A stretch of 64,000 nucleotides of DNA from Bugula neritina. Taxonomy: Eukaryota; Animalia; Bryozoa. Under the pieces are notes generated by a model. It searched no databases and was not told the DNA's origin. It saw nothing but the letters and a program-made list of their open reading frames with translations. Positions 54,001 to 64,000 of the stretch are shown here, piece by piece (the first letter of the stretch is position 1; each line of letters starts with the position of its first letter). Made by a program: the position numbers and the translations under genes. The stretch is taken from positions 18,476,995 through 18,540,994 of the forward strand of contig OZ037765.1 in assembly GCA_964035545.1 (NCBI GenBank). Reading direction: 5' to 3'.

Positions 54001-55523
54001 AAGTTTCTTTATCTTTTCATATTTTTTTTGTTCCTGTGACATTCAACCTGTTCGAGCTATCAGTGGAACATTGTTCATATAGAACATAAAGCACCTGGCA
54101 AAGAGCCAGAAAATGAAAAGTATGACCTTAAACTAACTGTGTTGTGGTTTTTATGCTATAGCCTATACACTATTACTATATCTCCAATAGATTATTTTTA
54201 TATAGCAAAGGATAAATACATCAGTTAAGCAAATATTTTCAGTTCTTCTCATTCAGCTCTACTCATTTTCACAATCCAAGTTTGGTGTATTTACAGAGAT
54301 CGGCAGTCCATGGCAAATACTATTTGTAAAGAAAACACATTTACAAGGTAATGAAAAAAGTCTTACTACAATTATATAGGAACTGATGAGATTTAACTTG
54401 CTTATCATTATCTCTATCCTCTATGTACCGCCTAAATATTCACACTTCATATTTTCAATGATTATTACTTTTGTTAGTTTATAAGGTTTCAACAATGCTT
54501 GCTGGACTAACGGTACTGGTTTTTACTCTCACTTTATGTTTACATTAGGGCTGTTGATGGTGAACAAGTGGCCTATCAGCATTAGCAAATCTTGTATACT
54601 ACTCATCATTGAATGCAATGACACAGTGTTACTAAATATAAGTTATCTATAATAATCTATAATAGTGTGAGAGTGCTTTGATTAGAATACGTCTGTTTAT
54701 TATGTATAATTGTAGTTTGAACAACTCATCTTCAAACGGTATTGATTTGAAACTTTCTGTGACTGTGAAAGATCCCAGGAGACAATTAACATACGAAGAC
54801 ATTAAAGGCTATATTGATGACAAATCTGAAGCTGATGAATGCATGAACAAACCAAGTCTGCTCAAACCAAAAAAGCCAGTCAATATCAATCTAACTGGAA
54901 AGTTTGTGCAGAGAACTGGTAGTGTAGCCAATAGCATATCCCGGTGTGTAGCAACGAATGCTAAAACTGAGCAGGCATCTAGTAGAAAACCCAAGGATGA
55001 CGCAAAGCTGCCTATTCCACTCAGACCAGCCCCTCTGGTTAGTTATAAGATGCCTTCTAGTTTGAAATGTAAAGTCACCATTGAGAGACTCCCAACACAA
55101 TCGGCCAAAAATGTCTACTTGTCTGCTAAAAGTTGCAATTTGGACACATCGAAATCAAGTAGACCCAATACCAACCTATCAAAGACAAGCCGTCACAGCT
55201 GTAAATCTGAATGCTCAATGCATAATGCTAAGTCAACTCAGCAAAGTTCACTCAACAGAAGGTCACTTGATAGTTTGACTTACACCTCTGGCTTTAATGG
55301 AGTCAGAATTCGGACTATAAAAAAAGAGTCGTCAACTTTAAGCAATACTCTAGATGATGATCGAAAAAAGCATTTGCAAGCTTTAGTGAAAATTCTTGGT
55401 GACCGAATGTTAAACCCTTGTTTGAACAACATAAATGTAGAGCCAAAGGCTATTGATTTCAGTGCAGGAATGGGAAAAGCAGAAGCTATTGACTACAATG
55501 TTATTTTTGGAAGCAGAATATAA
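51025..55523 (+). CDS. Uncharacterised Lys/Ser-rich protein. Exons ~51025(or 51062)-51350, 54297-54347, 54716-55523
   Basis: Three exons join in frame with canonical GT-AG sites (phase 2, phase 2). The last exon is an 808-nt open frame in AT-rich DNA. No recognisable domain; 5' end uncertain. Confidence 0.65.
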
Positions 55524-55622: not shown

Positions 55623-58600
55623 TCATGTGTAAAGTTCAAAGTCTATTCTTTTTGAAGAATAAAAGTCAGATCCTGCTCCAACTTTTCGAACATAGACTCC
55701 ACCAGGAAATTTGTCGTCATCAACAAATTTTTGCATCTGTGAACTGGTAAATGGACCACAAATCTCAGCTGATTCCTCATCAGTCTGTTTGTACTCCCAT
55801 TGTATGTCATCAGTGCTAGAAGGAGCAGCTGCCACTTGCTCAACTTTTCTTTTCTTTGATACTGGCTCATCTGAAATAATGGTTTATCAACTGTATGTAG
55901 TAGTGATTTTGAGTCACACAAGTCAACAATAATACCTACTATAGCTACCTACCAGCTATTGCTCTATTGTTCTAATGTCAATGACTTTGTTACTAGATGT
56001 TATTGTAGTTGTCATTTGTCAAGAAGTTGAAACATCTATGTAATCCCAAAAAGGTTTCTAATAAAATCACCAGCTTTACACTTAAATTTGCCTTTATCAA
56101 GTTCTAATGCAACACTTATTATTCTATAACTTGAACTTGATCTCAGGTCAAATGTAAAGTGTTCAACAATCAACAGCTGCTACAGTATAGTTATGACACT
56201 TGAATGATGTAAAATATAAAACAATTGTGATTATAATTTGCTGCATGATTGCAAGCACTAGATTGTGAATTTCTAAATCGCAACATATTTCAACAGACAT
56301 TATTTTCACATTCAACAAGATGAAAGTTACAACGCCACCAAATAAACTCTATGCTTGTAGAGTTCATATTTTGCGAAGGAATTTATTTATCGATCAATGG
56401 GGACAGTTCTAGACAAATGAGGCCGTATATCATATGAGCTTAAATTAATTCATTCAGTTGAAGCAAATGGAATGGATGCTAAATCAATAATTAAATCGTA
56501 GCCAAATGAAATCTTTTGCATTAAGAATCAGCAATTTTGGCAACCATCATTTACAAATTGAACTAATTGGGTTTAGGTTTACAATGTCTTAAACTTAGAA
56601 AAACTCGAGGTGGAGTGAACACGAATGTGGGACAGCTAAAACTGAACTAATGTTGGCCATATTTATTCATTGGCCATGTTTATTCATATATATTATTGGG
56701 TATAATGAAAAGATCCATTTTATTGAAGCCTTTTAGAGAGGAGCAAACTCCTTACTAGTAAACCATATGAATGTTTAGGTTTTCATTTGATCTAGCCTAA
56801 ATGAAAATCCATTTGAACACTGTATATGCATTGAATAAAATTAAAATTGAAGTAACATCAATCAAACTGAATGCCAACACACCATTATTTTTAGATTCAG
56901 ATTGTGCAACCTTTTCATCAAATTCTTCTCCAAACATGTCCAGTGCATCTTCTTCATTCTCTGGTAACTTCTCAAGCACCTTTTTTACTGGTTGCTCCTT
57001 TTCTTGAATTTTATACGCAATCTTCTCATAAGTATCGTCATATATTTCCATGTAGCCTTCATAGACAAGATAAAACAACCACTTACCAGAAAGGTAATAA
57101 TTCTGTGTACTTCAACCTATTGCTGCTCTAGTGTTAATAAAGGCTAAAATCTTACAAGAAAAACAAATTATGAATATTCACACACATTTGTAATGTGTGC
57201 ATATACTTACATGTAATGCACTCAATATATTACAAAATGTACATACAAGAGTGAGGTTAAAATTTAGTTTCTGGCAAAATTTTTTTGTTTTTATATGTGA
57301 AAATACATTTATTTCGCAACTTTTTCAAAGTCATTACTACCATGAGAATGTTGACTATGATGCCAGCAACATCCCAATTACAGTCTAACTGGTTGTCCAA
57401 AGCAGAAAACTCTATGAGATGACAACTCCTAATATCTTGCATTGCGGTTAAAGGATTGCTCTATCTTGTCTAATAAATGGCCATTTAGGTCAAACACACA
57501 TAATATTGTGTTTTTCTAAGCATGCATTGACAAAAAGCATTTGACCAAAGGTAGAAAAAGTTAGTTGAAGTTGAGGGTGTAGATTGGTAACAGCCAAAAC
57601 GCCGATTTTGAAATGAGCTGGGAAATGTGACGTAACAGCGCCAGCATTCCTGCTGGTCACATGACTATACAAATGAATAACTATAGAAATATGACTGTGA
57701 GATGTGATCTTTCAGCTCGTAATTTGTATATTTATAGAAGTGCAAATGTGAATTATCTCAATCTATAGTTTTTTGACATGTTAAATAACATGTATGTGAT
57801 AACATTAGGCCATATTTTGCTTGTAAACATAGAAAAAAGCATTGCAAAAACATGCATTCTTTAGAATGAATGCCTGCGATCGATCTAAACTAGGTCAGAT
57901 TGTGCAATGTTACGGGCACACCAAAGCTGACCTATATAGCGCACTGTAACTGCTTGAGCGTTATTGGTTGATGTTGCGCTCAGCAACCTTGAATACTAGC
58001 GTTATAGTTAGCACGTGCAGCATAGTTACTGGCGTTCACACGTCACGTATTAGGCTATTCTTTTTCATGGCTGAAAATTTTACCTCCCTCAAAATTAGAA
58101 TTTTGAAAAGCTGTTTTCTAGGCATATATCCCTTTGCAAAGTCAAAATTGTTTGCATACACATTAGATTATAGTTCATAATTATAATGTGATTGTAATAA
58201 ACTAAGATAGAGCAATCCTTTAATGGTTACTAATAGTCAACTTTTAAGCAACCACAGCAGTAATTAATTCAAAACTATACAGAGACATTGTTTCCAAAAA
58301 CATGACAACTAACCAAATCAGTTTGCAGACCTGACAAAGCACACAGACTACTTGCAGTTTGAAAGACATTATTAGTAAGAGTATGGAAACTCCACAGTTG
58401 GTAAGCAATTAGTCACTAGCAGGAAAGTATGACAAGCAATGTATAATCTTTAGCTGAACAGTTTTTAAATATGGTGGTGTAAGTATCCACTAGCTATCTA
58501 ATGGTGTAGTAAAACACCTAAAATTATCATTCTAATCCCCACTCCTTCTAAATAACTCAACACAATACCTGATTGTATGAATTTATCAGCCAATGAAGTC

Positions 58601-61600
58601 AAAGTCTGAAAGAATTCCTTGTTTTTTATCTCCTCTTCTGTTGGCTTGATTCCAAGTTTCTTAGCCTTTAGCCGTTGAGCTGATGACAGCTTCTTGTTTC
58701 CTCCCCCGAGACGTCTCAAGGACTTGGCGACGGTTTCGCCAGGCAGCATTAAGCTGACCATTTCTGTGGACAGTGTAACAACACAATGGTATCAAGACAA
58801 ATATGGTAATCAATACTGCTGAATTTAGATTTTGATATAGTCCTGGCAAAAGTCTTGCACCTTTTACATCTATGGAAATTTCAAGACATGCTGATTTTAA
58901 TTAGGATAATGTTCAGTACACTGTAAAATATATCTTGCGTTGAAGGAGAAAAGAAATATTTGAATAAATAATCATTCAACTTTATGTAACTCATTCAAAT
59001 CACCACATTGGCTTTCTATATCGTGGTATAGTTTTCTGAAGCTAAGATTATCTCTATATATCAGCGAATCTCAAGTTTTCGAAGGGTATGAAAAGTGTGA
59101 GGTGACAGAAGAGTATTGAGTTGATTTTACTCAATGGCTCTTAAATGCACGTTAAAGCTCATCCTATAGGAATTCAAAACAAAAATAAACTATTTTTAAC
59201 ATGCATTATATCACTATTATCCATATATCGATACCATCTATATATCGCTATAATCTGCATATCGCGATCATCTATACATCACTATAATCTATATGTCTCG
59301 CTATCGTCTATATAACATCGAGATTATCTGCATATTGATAACAACGACAGAGGATCAAATTGTTGAGCAACAAACAAAACTTGAATCAACTAATATCTAC
59401 AGAGTAAGACATGTTATGACTCATACCATAGTAGTAAGCAGACAGTACCACTATCATAAGCAAAAAGCAGAAGTTAAGATATATCACCTTTCCATAAGGA
59501 CAACTCATCAACTTCTTCTGGTTCAGAGTCGGACGACTCCAACTCTTTTTCTTTTACAGCTTTAGCATTCTGTTTAACCTTCACCCAATCTATGTCATCC
59601 ATCCAACTGTCTTTAATTTCAGTCTAAAACACCACAATTCCATTGGTCAGGTCTCTGAGAAAACATGAAATATTAAAATGTGGCAATTACTTCATATTGA
59701 ATAATGTTCAAAAGATTTTGTTGACCATGTGCTTCATTAAAATTTGGACGTTGCCTTTGAGTATAAAAAGTGATTTATGTATTAATAATAGGACATAAGT
59801 CGTACCTCTTTATCAAATATATATGTACCAGTCTTGTCAAAATGACCTGTTTCCATTTCTTCTCTCATATTGAATGGAGTTATAGTTGTGCTGCCATCAA
59901 AAGCTATTGTATCGTCTTCTTGACCTTTGTGACACAAGAAAAGGCTGTGTTTGTTAGTAAATTCTAATGCTTTTTATATAACAGATTGAGCCTTGAAATG
60001 CCTCAACACACAAGAAAAAAACCTTTTAACTCGTGAAATAAAAACTAGATTATAAAGCAAGTGGTTTTTAATAATTTAGTAATAAAATATGACATAATCT
60101 CATCCACAGTTATTTTGTTTCATTTTTGGGGCCATAAATAAATAAAAATGCACTTATGAGCCATAAAAAGTTTTAGATTCACAAATACCTAAAACTCTCC
60201 ACTTACAAAAATATGCATATCATTAACATCATTGAGTAGTCTCTCATCAAAAACTTTTTATGATTGAAAATATTTTCGAAGATCCTAAATTCAACTTGCA
60301 ACGCATACTTTTGATGATATTATATATAAACTCACTTTGTGTTTTCTAATGCAAGTGAGAAAAAAATATATTATAGTTCAACCTTTGTGTGCATGGTCAG
60401 CTTTACAGTGAAAAGTAACATACAATGGTTCAATAATTGATGCATCTATCTGTGTAAAGTGTACCTTCAATATCATCGTCATCCATTCGGTCATCTTGAT
60501 CTTGTATATCTTCCTCATCACTGTCCAGCGTGTGTTTTTTTATAATATCATCTGCTAATGCTTTAGAATCTCCAATCTACATACAAGAGAGCCATGTTGA
60601 GCACTAAGTAACTGGTAATCAGTGTCTATGTTGATGCTTGACCATTATACAGCAGTAAGACTAAGATGCTTGGATAAAACACTTTTGGTCACCTAATAAA
60701 AGCTATCTGAAGATTTACGAAAGGCGATATGAAACTAGTCTTCCAACTTTTTGCAAAGACATTGGCTACACTCAGGAATGTCTAGTCAGCTAGTCTACTT
60801 TGATTATTTTGATTCAATAAGCTTGACGGGTTAGATTTTATATTAACAGAGAAAATTACATTCAATCAAAAGTTATATAGATTTATTAGACAATTGAAAA
60901 TTAATAACAAAGCAAATCAATTGATGAAATGTGAAAAACATCATGTATGCACAATAACAATAATTTTAATAATTTAATACAGTAGCTTTGGGCTAAAATA
61001 TCTATTAAAAGCAAAAGAATGATTCAAAGTATTATTAAACTCAATTTTATTTTCAAGTTACACTCACAAGACCAGAATTGAATAGCCCACATAACTTAAA
61101 CATTGTCCAGTAAAAATGCTAAATAAAACTTTTATTATTCGATTACTTCTGTTTTATATAAGTCATTAGCCATTGGTGGGACACAAACCATGGTGTGCCA
61201 GTCATAAACATGCCTTTGTGGAAGAAACCAAGCTCTTCCGTATTCCCCAAAGCATGCATATGTAAGTGACTTATGGAGTTGAATGGTGGCCAATGGTAGC
61301 CAAACCTTTTATTATTGCCGGACTGAAAGCCTTGCTGAACAAGCACATTTTCGCCCACTTCAAGCATATGATTAAGTAAACCAAAATTGTCATTCGTTAG
61401 GGTCTTCGGACTTTCTAGATGCTCTTTAGGAACAACCAGATAGTGATGCCTCGTAGCTGGTTTGATGTCTTTAAAAACAACTACAGTTTCATCTTCATAG
61501 AGTATTTCAGTCTCCTTACCATTTACTAGCACTTTATTAACAATGTCACAGAAAACGCATTTCTTGCTATTTGCCATTTCAATTTTCTAAATGAATTACG

Positions 61601-62972
61601 TTGCTTTATTTCTTGTTATCAGAGTGGTTAAGAACAGTCCAAAGTATAAGGATGTTAGTGATGAAGAAGTGCAATCAGATTGATGTATGAAATGACCATT
61701 CATCACTGGAACATAAACATACAGCAATACAATTGCATAATTGAGCTGTCTCAAAAACTTCAAAGTTGATTTAAATTCAACGAAATTAACTTGAATCAAG
61801 TTTGAGTTGAATTGCTTTAGCTCTGAAACATGGCAAAAAATAATATTGAAATTTCAGTCCCACGAATTTAATATGAGTACTCTTTGTTAATTTTCTATTT
61901 GGTTTATATTAATAAAGTACTATCTTATATGCATATGTAAAAATGCATTTATTTACAATATGACTGTAAGTATGAATATAACCATTCATTTTATAGCCAT
62001 AGGCTATAAAATTAATTATCCATCACTTATGATATGTCTTAACAAACTGCATCATTACTGTACAAAATTAAGCTAAATGATTGAGTGATTGTCAACAGGA
62101 ATAAATCTAAATTTAAACTTTGTGATTGTAAATTGACTATATATTGATTAAAAGCAATTCTTTATAGTTCAATAGAAATATCAAAATTATTATTCTTTAT
62201 TGAATCAATGCTGCCAAAACAATATTACTGGTAAATGTAAATCTAAAATAATCACAAATTTGAGCATGTATTTAATTTTCCATTCTATTAGTATTAATAT
62301 TATTAATGATTACAAACTTAGAACAAGAATGAAGTTAAAAAATTAGAAAACTATAATAAAAACAGTACTATAATAATAGCTATTGTAAAATTTATACACA
62401 CCACACTTCAAACTCAAAATATTTTAATCAAATATATATTATTATTACATTATAACTATTATATTAAATAAATAATTATAGTAATTATTATTTATATTGT
62501 AATTATATTGATAATGATATACTTTAGGTTTCAATTTTTATCAAATGCACCTTGTAGATCGAATACTTAAAATCTTATTCAAATTGATCTACGCTGACTT
62601 ATATAATTAACCTTAAGATATTTAACTTCAACCTAGACTTAAAGTTGGTTTCAGATTTGACATTTTCATCAGATCATGATTTACTTTTAGAATTGATTAG
62701 CAACAGCTTTGAGTTTCAATCGGCTCTGATGAAAGTTTTAATAAAGCAATAAAAGCCTTACAACTTTGTTTGTATCTTACACTCAAAAACTACCAGTAAA
62801 GTTATAGTATAACTATAACATTAACAGTTAACTATTAGTATTAGTATAAGTATAAGATTAAGAGTAAGACTAAGTTTAAGTGCAAAACTGAGATTTGGAT
62901 TTAGTTACTTACAATTTGACTTTCAGTTTCACTTGGATTTTTCTGAAAAGACACCTGTTTTTGCTTAGACAT
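55623..62972 (-). CDS. CD2BP2: CD2 antigen cytoplasmic tail-binding protein 2 (U5-52K/Lin1, GYF domain). Exons 62913-62972, 60465-60576, ~59806-59923, ~59488-59623, ~58569-58763, ~56882-57058, 55623-~55870
   Basis: Reads MSKQKQVSFQ, KKHTLDSDEED, EG/QEDDTI...ITPFNMREEMETGHFD, DSWMDDIDW, LMLPGETVAKSLRRLG, GYMEIYDDTYEKI and LDMF, ending in the GYF domain WEYK...GPFTSSQMQKFVDDDKF...FYSSKRIDFELYT. Confidence 0.95.
59211..59340. repeat. Degenerate ~17-bp tandem repeat (tcgctataatctatata-like) in a CD2BP2 intron
   Basis: About 7 diverged units visible. Confidence 0.6.
61143..61577 (-). CDS. HINT3: Histidine triad nucleotide-binding protein 3, single coding exon nested in CD2BP2 intron 1
   Basis: Contains CVFCDI, VVFKDIKPATRHHYLVVPKEH and FGYHWPPFNSISHLHMHAL (HIT motif in a HINT3-type HWPPF context). 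Intact 144-aa ORF. Confidence 0.93.
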   Translation of the reverse strand: MANSKKCVFCDIVNKVLVNGKETEILYEDETVVVFKDIKPATRHHYLVVPKEHLESPKTLTNDNFGLLNHMLEVGENVLVQQGFQSGNNKRFGYHWPPFNSISHLHMHALGNTEELGFFHKGMFMTGTPWFVSHQWLMTYIKQK

Positions 62973-63103
62973 ACTCCACTTTTTAAAATTAAATTAGCGA
63001 AACCGAGAAAAAAGTACTTGATTAAAATTTTTTATAAAATTTAAAACAGTCTTTCAAAGCTGACAGTGACTGAAACGGAGTATAAGCGGTTCAAAAAAAG
63101 TTC

Positions 63104-63258
63104 TATAAGCAACTCCGAGTTGAGGGTGACTGAGTGCAGTAGTTTGAAATTCCCGAGTTTGATGTACGGGGTATAAATTAGAGCTTTGAACCCCCAACTC
63201 CACACTCGAGAGTCGCAAATTACTGCACTCAGTTACTCCCAACTCGAAGCTGCTTATA
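63104..63258. repeat. Inverted repeat (~55-bp arms), MITE-like, just upstream of CD2BP2/HINT3 exon 1
   Basis: tataagcaactccgagttgagggtgactgagtgcagtagtttg ... caaattactgcactcagttactcccaactcgaagctgcttata. Confidence 0.8.
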
Positions 63259-64000
63259 AACTATTCTAGTTTCAAAGATTACACCATAGATGGTTTAAAT
63301 GTAATCGGTGTGACTTGGTGCGGTTATATTTGAAACCAGACACGTATATACTATATAAAATAATATACATCGTCGAAGAACTCTATTATCCCATTCTATG
63401 CTATCATGTATTCTTCGACAAACATTGCCAGGGAGCAACAAGTGATAAGACCATTTTCCACAGTCTAGAAGCCTTCCAAAGGAATTTTGCAATACATTTC
63501 ATTATTAGCATGCATACAAATAGAAATTATATTTTCTTTATATAAGTTTCACTATTTGCCTATATATAGGAACAACAAAATAAACCTTGAGAAAGCAGAA
63601 AGCTTGAGTACACTATAAAATTCCAATTGCAGCTAAAGAAAAATGCAGATGTAAGCGTGGGAAACTTAGCCATGCAGTCAAAGAGATGTTTGTCTACCAA
63701 TGTTGATGTTATAATGTAAATGACTAATTAACTAAAATTTATAGTCCAATGTATATAACTTTCTGCAACACTGATTAATGTACTGTAAAATCCATGCTTT
63801 TTCAAAACAGATTCGCAACTTCTGCTACATGCATTCCTCTATAAAAAGTCATACAAGTTTGGAGTCACTACCCCTGCGAGAAGCCCTGGTGGAAAGGTGT
63901 TGCTATATTTGACTAAAGATTTATTCATATGTGACACAGGGGCAATTTTATGATTGGGGATGGAGCCCACGACCTTAAGTTTACTAAACCAAGCGCTCTA

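Follow-up and report, generated by a model that had tools for sequence, protein, structure and literature searches.

A 64-kb stretch of the Bugula neritina genome (contig OZ037765.1 of assembly GCA_964035545.1), referred to here as the window, carries the gene for CD2BP2 and, wholly within its first intron and on the same strand, a nested gene for HINT3. CD2BP2, also known as the U5 small nuclear ribonucleoprotein (snRNP) 52K protein, is a GYF-domain protein that acts as a spliceosomal and snRNP-assembly factor. Assembled RNA sequences join the same first exon to both coding regions. Coordinates are those of the window, which is AT-rich (26 to 36% G+C); both genes lie on its minus strand.

The CD2BP2 gene and the HINT3 gene in its first intron

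Exon 1 of CD2BP2 (62913-63032) is visible in the sequence and is covered by RNA contigs at 62913-62962 and 62933-63032, the 5' untranslated region (UTR) reaching to at least 63032. The CD2BP2 ATG (62972-62970, with A at position -3) opens a run of 20 codons (60 nt, MSKQKQVSFQKNPSETESQI) that ends in phase 0 at 62913 and is followed by a GTAAGT donor (62912-62907). The exon is 96% identical between the window and a sibling genome introduced below, compared with 56 to 68% for its flanks. Exon 2 (60465-60576, 112 nt) starts in phase 0, and the remainder of the gene occupies 55623-59924. Within this remainder, exon 3 (59924-59806) matches residues 74 to 111 of human CD2BP2 (2.5e-07), exon 4 lies at 59623-59488, exon 5 starts at 58763 with further exons downstream of it, and the last exon (55835-55623) matches the human CD2BP2 GYF domain (4e-18). 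The gene thus has the C-terminal GYF domain of CD2BP2, with collinear N-terminal and central regions that are joined to exon 1 in the mRNA, and PF02213 was found in the homologous CD2BP2 gene of the three sibling sequences (L002 to L004). The peptide encoded by exon 1 presumably resembles the N-terminus of human CD2BP2; a search against solved CD2BP2 chains gave no match, the query being too short to score.

Inside intron 1 lies an intronless coding sequence (61143-61577, 144 aa) with Pfam matches to DcpS_C (4e-30) and HIT (3.5e-12) and with the histidine triad HLHMH (motif HLHMHAL). Its product is 97% identical to a Bugula neritina protein named HINT3 at NCBI. Nearly all of its named relatives are labelled HINT3 and the rest carry generic names, with identities running from 97% in the bryozoan through molluscs to 38 to 48% in vertebrates; structures of aprataxin and HINT1 match the ORF (open reading frame) more weakly, at 1e-14 to 1e-12. 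Judged by these similarities, the ORF is HINT3 and not HINT1/2 or aprataxin. It is the only HINT3 match in the 216,009,554-base assembly, and its ATG has G at -3 and G at +4. An initial annotation of the window had described this anatomy, with exon 1 at 62972-62913 ending in phase 0 before GTAAGT, the HINT3 ORF, and exon 2 starting at 60576, and all of these elements were found in the sequence.

One first exon in two mRNAs

To follow the two genes in RNA, we compared Logan contigs from four runs of four studies (X1, X4, X10, and X11) with window positions 58300-63300. One run is labelled RNA-Seq and the other three were guessed to be RNA; the CD2BP2 introns are spliced out of the same contigs, so what was sequenced is RNA. 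The sibling genome used for comparison consists of an older draft (GCA_010799875.2, L003) and two JGI metagenome contigs (L002 and L004), with about 95% nucleotide identity to the window. In exons, the four runs, all labelled with the species name, differ from the window by about 4 to 5% and match the older draft instead. This difference is consistent with a diverged lineage that bears the same species name, B. neritina being, we assume, a complex of cryptic species.

The joint from exon 1 to exon 2 (62913 to 60576), one of two that the initial annotation had predicted, was present in all four runs, and the skipped stretch is bounded by GT and AG. The next CD2BP2 joint, from 60463/60465 to 59922/59924, was likewise found in four of four runs, and the joints 59806 to 59623 and 59488 to 58763 were also recovered. 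HINT3 contigs showed a second joint from the same donor. It was reported as 62913 to 61702 in all four runs, with three letters in between (CCA on the plus strand, TGG on the minus strand). At this acceptor the window reads AG TGA TGA and the sibling genome tgtttatgttccAG TGG TGA, the sibling TGG corresponding to window 61705-61703; the sibling genome also shares a 2-nt deletion seen in the contigs at 61665. The contigs are therefore of the sibling type, the three letters are a strain difference, and the true joint is 62913 to 61705. On this contig evidence, the two mRNAs have the 3' part of exon 1 in common, joined from one donor in four of four independent runs, and HINT3 accordingly behaves as an alternative terminal exon within the transcription unit of CD2BP2. 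Contig depth was 23 to 65 for HINT3 and 63 to 189 for CD2BP2, a rough hint only, as such depth is unfit for ranking genes. These joints correct existing gene models: in the sibling draft (L003, 5753-7139) the public annotation gives a stand-alone HINT3 and a 138-aa GYF fragment of CD2BP2, with neither the shared first exon nor the upstream CD2BP2 exons.

An artefact could in principle produce such a joint, whether by chimeric assembly, by template switching, or by trans-splicing of a spliced-leader type that was taken for exon 1. The evidence comes from contigs, and the stretch of exon 1 attached to HINT3 is short (only 30 to 36 nt; over all joined contigs the reach into exon 1 is 19 to 36 nt); an overhang of about 30 nt is nevertheless what a k=31 assembly graph is expected to leave where two isoforms branch. 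Since four runs of four studies have this joint in common, at a canonical AG and with the donor of the CD2BP2 joint, and since what precedes the HINT3 leader is exon 1 of the locus itself, we regard an artefact as highly improbable. Spliced-leader trans-splicing at the AG just before the HINT3 ATG was rejected on the same grounds, the attached letters being the locus's own exon 1 and the joint lying at a different AG.

The acceptor in use (AG at 61706-61707, context tgtttatgttccAG) lies 128 nt before the HINT3 ATG, and the same AG is found in the sibling genome, 126 nt before the ATG. The initial annotation had instead placed the acceptor at 61588-61587, 9 nt before the ATG and 119 nt downstream of the one used, and had proposed that exon 1 is spliced there in frame to HINT3, giving a protein with 23 extra N-terminal residues. 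That AG exists, overlapped by an in-frame TAG, and a splice there would be in frame in the window; rare splice variants can also drop out of contigs. All four runs, however, join 62913 to 61705, and no 62913 to 61586 joint was reported in their contigs. The pyrimidine tract is weak at the proposed AG, with 9 pyrimidines in the 20 upstream positions, versus 13 of 20 at the acceptor in use. Nor is its position kept: the sibling genome has tttAAGAAATT where the window has tttAGAAAATT, which shifts the AG by 1 nt to 8 nt before the ATG and out of frame, and phase agreement in the window would arise by chance in one case out of three. We consider use of this acceptor very unlikely.

Reading frames across the joints, obtained by counting phases and translating each exon by reference, bear directly on the proposed in-frame product. 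Translated from 61705, the HINT3 exon begins with two stops in the window (TGA TGA, 61700-61705) and with tryptophan and a stop in the sibling genome and the RNA (TGG TGA), so the frame of exon 1 closes in the first or second codon past the joint. The HINT3 ATG, 128 nt after the acceptor (126 nt in the sibling), is also out of the exon 1 frame. With a stop at the junction and HINT3 in a different frame, the observed isoform cannot encode a fusion protein, and an in-frame fusion is refuted for the main isoform. Of the idea that one first exon serves two proteins, the shared exon therefore stands, with joints from 62913 to both 60576 and 61705, and the in-frame splice does not. On the HINT3 mRNA, the CD2BP2 ATG instead opens an upstream ORF (uORF) of 20 to 21 codons that ends at the exon junction, 122 to 125 nt before the HINT3 ATG. 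Its stop codon lies in the last exon, where the exon-junction rule of nonsense-mediated decay would not apply.

The HINT3 terminal exon (60935-61705) comprises the 128-nt leader, the coding sequence, and a 3' UTR of about 200 nt whose end is approximate. Continuous HINT3 contigs run from 61702 to 60964, plus 17 to 33 diverged letters beyond, in three runs. The initial annotation had pointed to AATAAA signals at about 61131 and 61046, and both hexamers are present (61136-61131 and 61051-61046); the contigs do not end there but pass both and stop at about 60931-60947 (three runs). Two ATTAAA hexamers (60978-60973 and 60970-60965), about 20 to 40 nt before the contig stops, are candidate poly(A) signals. 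No joint leading from the HINT3 exon onward to exon 2 at 60576 was seen in the contigs of the four runs. Taken together, we infer that the HINT3 exon is terminal, with cleavage and polyadenylation in CD2BP2 intron 1 near 60935.

Conservation and origin of the nested gene

Synteny in related genomes, which the initial annotation had named as a check on the nesting, agrees with it. HINT3 is an unbroken ORF in the window as in all seven sequences L002 to L008, and in three of the more distant ones an intronless HINT3 lies upstream of a homologue of CD2BP2 exon 2 on the same strand (L006 was left out of this comparison because it extends too short a distance downstream). In L005, HINT3 (62% identity, 595-1023) precedes exon 2 at 1976-2080, and in L008, HINT3 (54%, 702-1145) precedes exon 2 at 1536-1622. 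The scaffold L007, labelled BRYA16, has HINT3 (55%) with its ATG at 1237, exon 2 at 2177-2327 (BLAST match 2241-2327), and exon 3 at 2874-2990. It also carries a homologue of exon 1 upstream of HINT3 (205-255), 17 codons beginning MSGKKSVSF that end in phase 0 and are followed by gtaagg. In its DNA layout, the nesting is kept in these three more distant relatives, presumably bryozoans. Candidate HINT3 acceptors picked by eye in the three disagree, one giving an immediate stop and one being in frame, and we draw no claim from them.

Outside this group the arrangement differs. The scallop Pecten maximus has a HINT3 gene of at least 5 coding exons spread over 17.7 kb beside a PAP2 gene, and in the sea slug Elysia crispata HINT3 is intronless (L010, 10001-10453). 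No CD2BP2 exon was found within 10 kb of HINT3 in either mollusc, and an ancient HINT3-CD2BP2 linkage was rejected on this basis. The nested, intronless state is therefore a derived one within the sampled bryozoan lineage. Because HINT3 is also intronless in Elysia, away from CD2BP2, either its introns have been lost more than once or parent genes have repeatedly been replaced by retrocopies.

A bryozoan HINT3 without introns, set against a scallop gene that has them, is the pattern expected of a retrogene, an intronless copy of a gene with ancestral introns. No surviving HINT3 parent gene was found in the 216-Mb genome, and the single HINT3 match rules out a retrocopy whose parent is still living. 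At the age suggested by 54 to 62% protein identity among carriers, neither a poly(A) remnant nor a target-site duplication would be expected to survive in the flanks. We infer that an intronless, retrocopy-like HINT3 entered the host intron in a bryozoan ancestor, adopted the promoter and first exon of its host, and replaced its parent to become the sole HINT3.

A shared transcription unit and its known parallels

These data favor a model, to which we assign a probability of roughly 0.8, of a single transcription unit for CD2BP2 and HINT3, whose transcripts start with a common first exon and then take one of two routes. Splicing of the exon 1 donor at 62913 to the distal acceptor at 60576 yields CD2BP2 mRNA, and splicing of the same donor to the proximal acceptor at 61706/61705 yields HINT3 mRNA, whose last exon would end by cleavage and polyadenylation near 60935, within CD2BP2 intron 1. 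On this second mRNA the CD2BP2 start would serve as the 20- to 21-codon uORF, and HINT3 would be translated from its own ATG.

Several points weigh against this model. The HINT3 leader contains a second short uORF (ATG at 61699) whose length and peptide differ between the window and the sibling, and translation of HINT3 would presumably proceed by reinitiation or leaky scanning. All of the RNA evidence consists of de Bruijn contigs, which are blind to transcription starts, ends, and minor isoforms, and they come from a lineage about 5% diverged and not from the window's own strain. The intron upstream of HINT3 offers room for a different account, in which HINT3 is nested but largely independent, driven by a promoter of its own in CD2BP2 intron 1, and the form spliced to exon 1 is a by-product of host transcription. 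Positions 61800-62199 are 85 to 91% identical to the sibling genome, versus 56 to 85% (mostly below 80%) in the distal intron, and low-depth contigs lie at 61790-61941 and 62060-62221. A precedent exists at the cholinergic locus, where VAChT has its own promoters besides the shared exons (PMC3053374). Against such a promoter, the HINT3 contig of each of the four runs passes from the acceptor to exon 1 without run-on into the intron. The intronic contigs have a depth of only 3 to 6, compared with 23 to 65 for the HINT3 contig, and contigs of comparably low depth are present in further CD2BP2 introns of run X11, which makes them look like pre-mRNA. We therefore think an independent HINT3 gene unlikely and retain the single transcription unit as the preferred model.

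Upstream of the shared exon, a palindromic element of about 155 nt (63104-63258, with 74-nt arms that are 77% complementary and 7 nt apart) sits about 130 nt from the CD2BP2 ATG and is also present in the sibling genome. The element is similar to a miniature inverted-repeat transposable element (MITE), with at least 612 first-look candidates genome-wide at 70 to 83% identity. Many unrelated RNA contigs enter it, with a summed contig depth of about 2465 in run X11. The shared promoter may lie in or beside this element. At the other end of the locus, directly past the CD2BP2 stop, the opposite strand carries a 281-aa open frame (54678-55523, plus strand). Homologues are called in L002 and L004 (273 aa each) and in L003 (395 aa, with several exons); no Pfam match is on record.

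The identity of the host invites a regulatory extension of the model. The initial annotation had suggested a possible splicing-sensitive switch that trades CD2BP2 for HINT3. In a more elaborate version, CD2BP2 could regulate its own abundance, with HINT3 moving the opposite way, through the choice between the proximal acceptor with intronic poly(A) site and the distal acceptor, in a circuit conserved among bryozoans; the uORF would further tie HINT3 output to reinitiation and so to translational stress. We regard this circuit as unlikely.

In kind, the arrangement is a known one, with parallels in ChAT/VAChT, POLN/HAUS3, and retrocopies that use host exons, and it shows no new mechanism. Among the papers searched, none mentions HINT3 together with CD2BP2. 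In vertebrates, the coding exons of HAUS3 sit within the first intron of POLN; the two genes have a first exon in common and apparently a single promoter, and alternative splicing sets expression (PMC4591814). The bryozoan pair is similar in having a nested gene in the first intron of its host, on the same strand and with a common first exon. It differs in that the exon shared by POLN and HAUS3 is 5' UTR for both, whereas here it holds the host start codon and 20 codons and would act as a uORF for the nested gene, and in that the nested HINT3 is a single terminal exon.

The cholinergic locus offers a second parallel. VAChT is a single-exon ORF in intron 1 of ChAT, an arrangement conserved from nematodes to mammals (PMC3053374). 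As in that locus, the whole nested ORF of HINT3 is one exon in host intron 1, in the same orientation and conserved across lineages, and shared upstream exons and alternative splicing take part in expression. Unlike the cholinergic pair, which works in one pathway and includes the documented VAChT promoters, HINT3 and CD2BP2 have no known functional link. A third parallel comes from intronic retrocopies transcribed as chimeras with host exons that lie upstream of them, of which 13 are described in human and 14 in mouse, for example, Taf9 in Ak6 (PMC4772013). There, as here, an intronless copy within a host intron is spliced to an upstream host exon and uses the host promoter; unlike the case of Taf9 in Ak6, no HINT3 parent copy survives, and HINT3 is only a putative retrocopy. 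Relative to these systems, the locus provides an RNA-supported invertebrate case in which two unrelated proteins come from one first exon and one putative promoter. Two features set it apart: an exon that encodes part of the host protein serves the guest as a uORF, and the protein made by the host is itself a spliceosomal factor.

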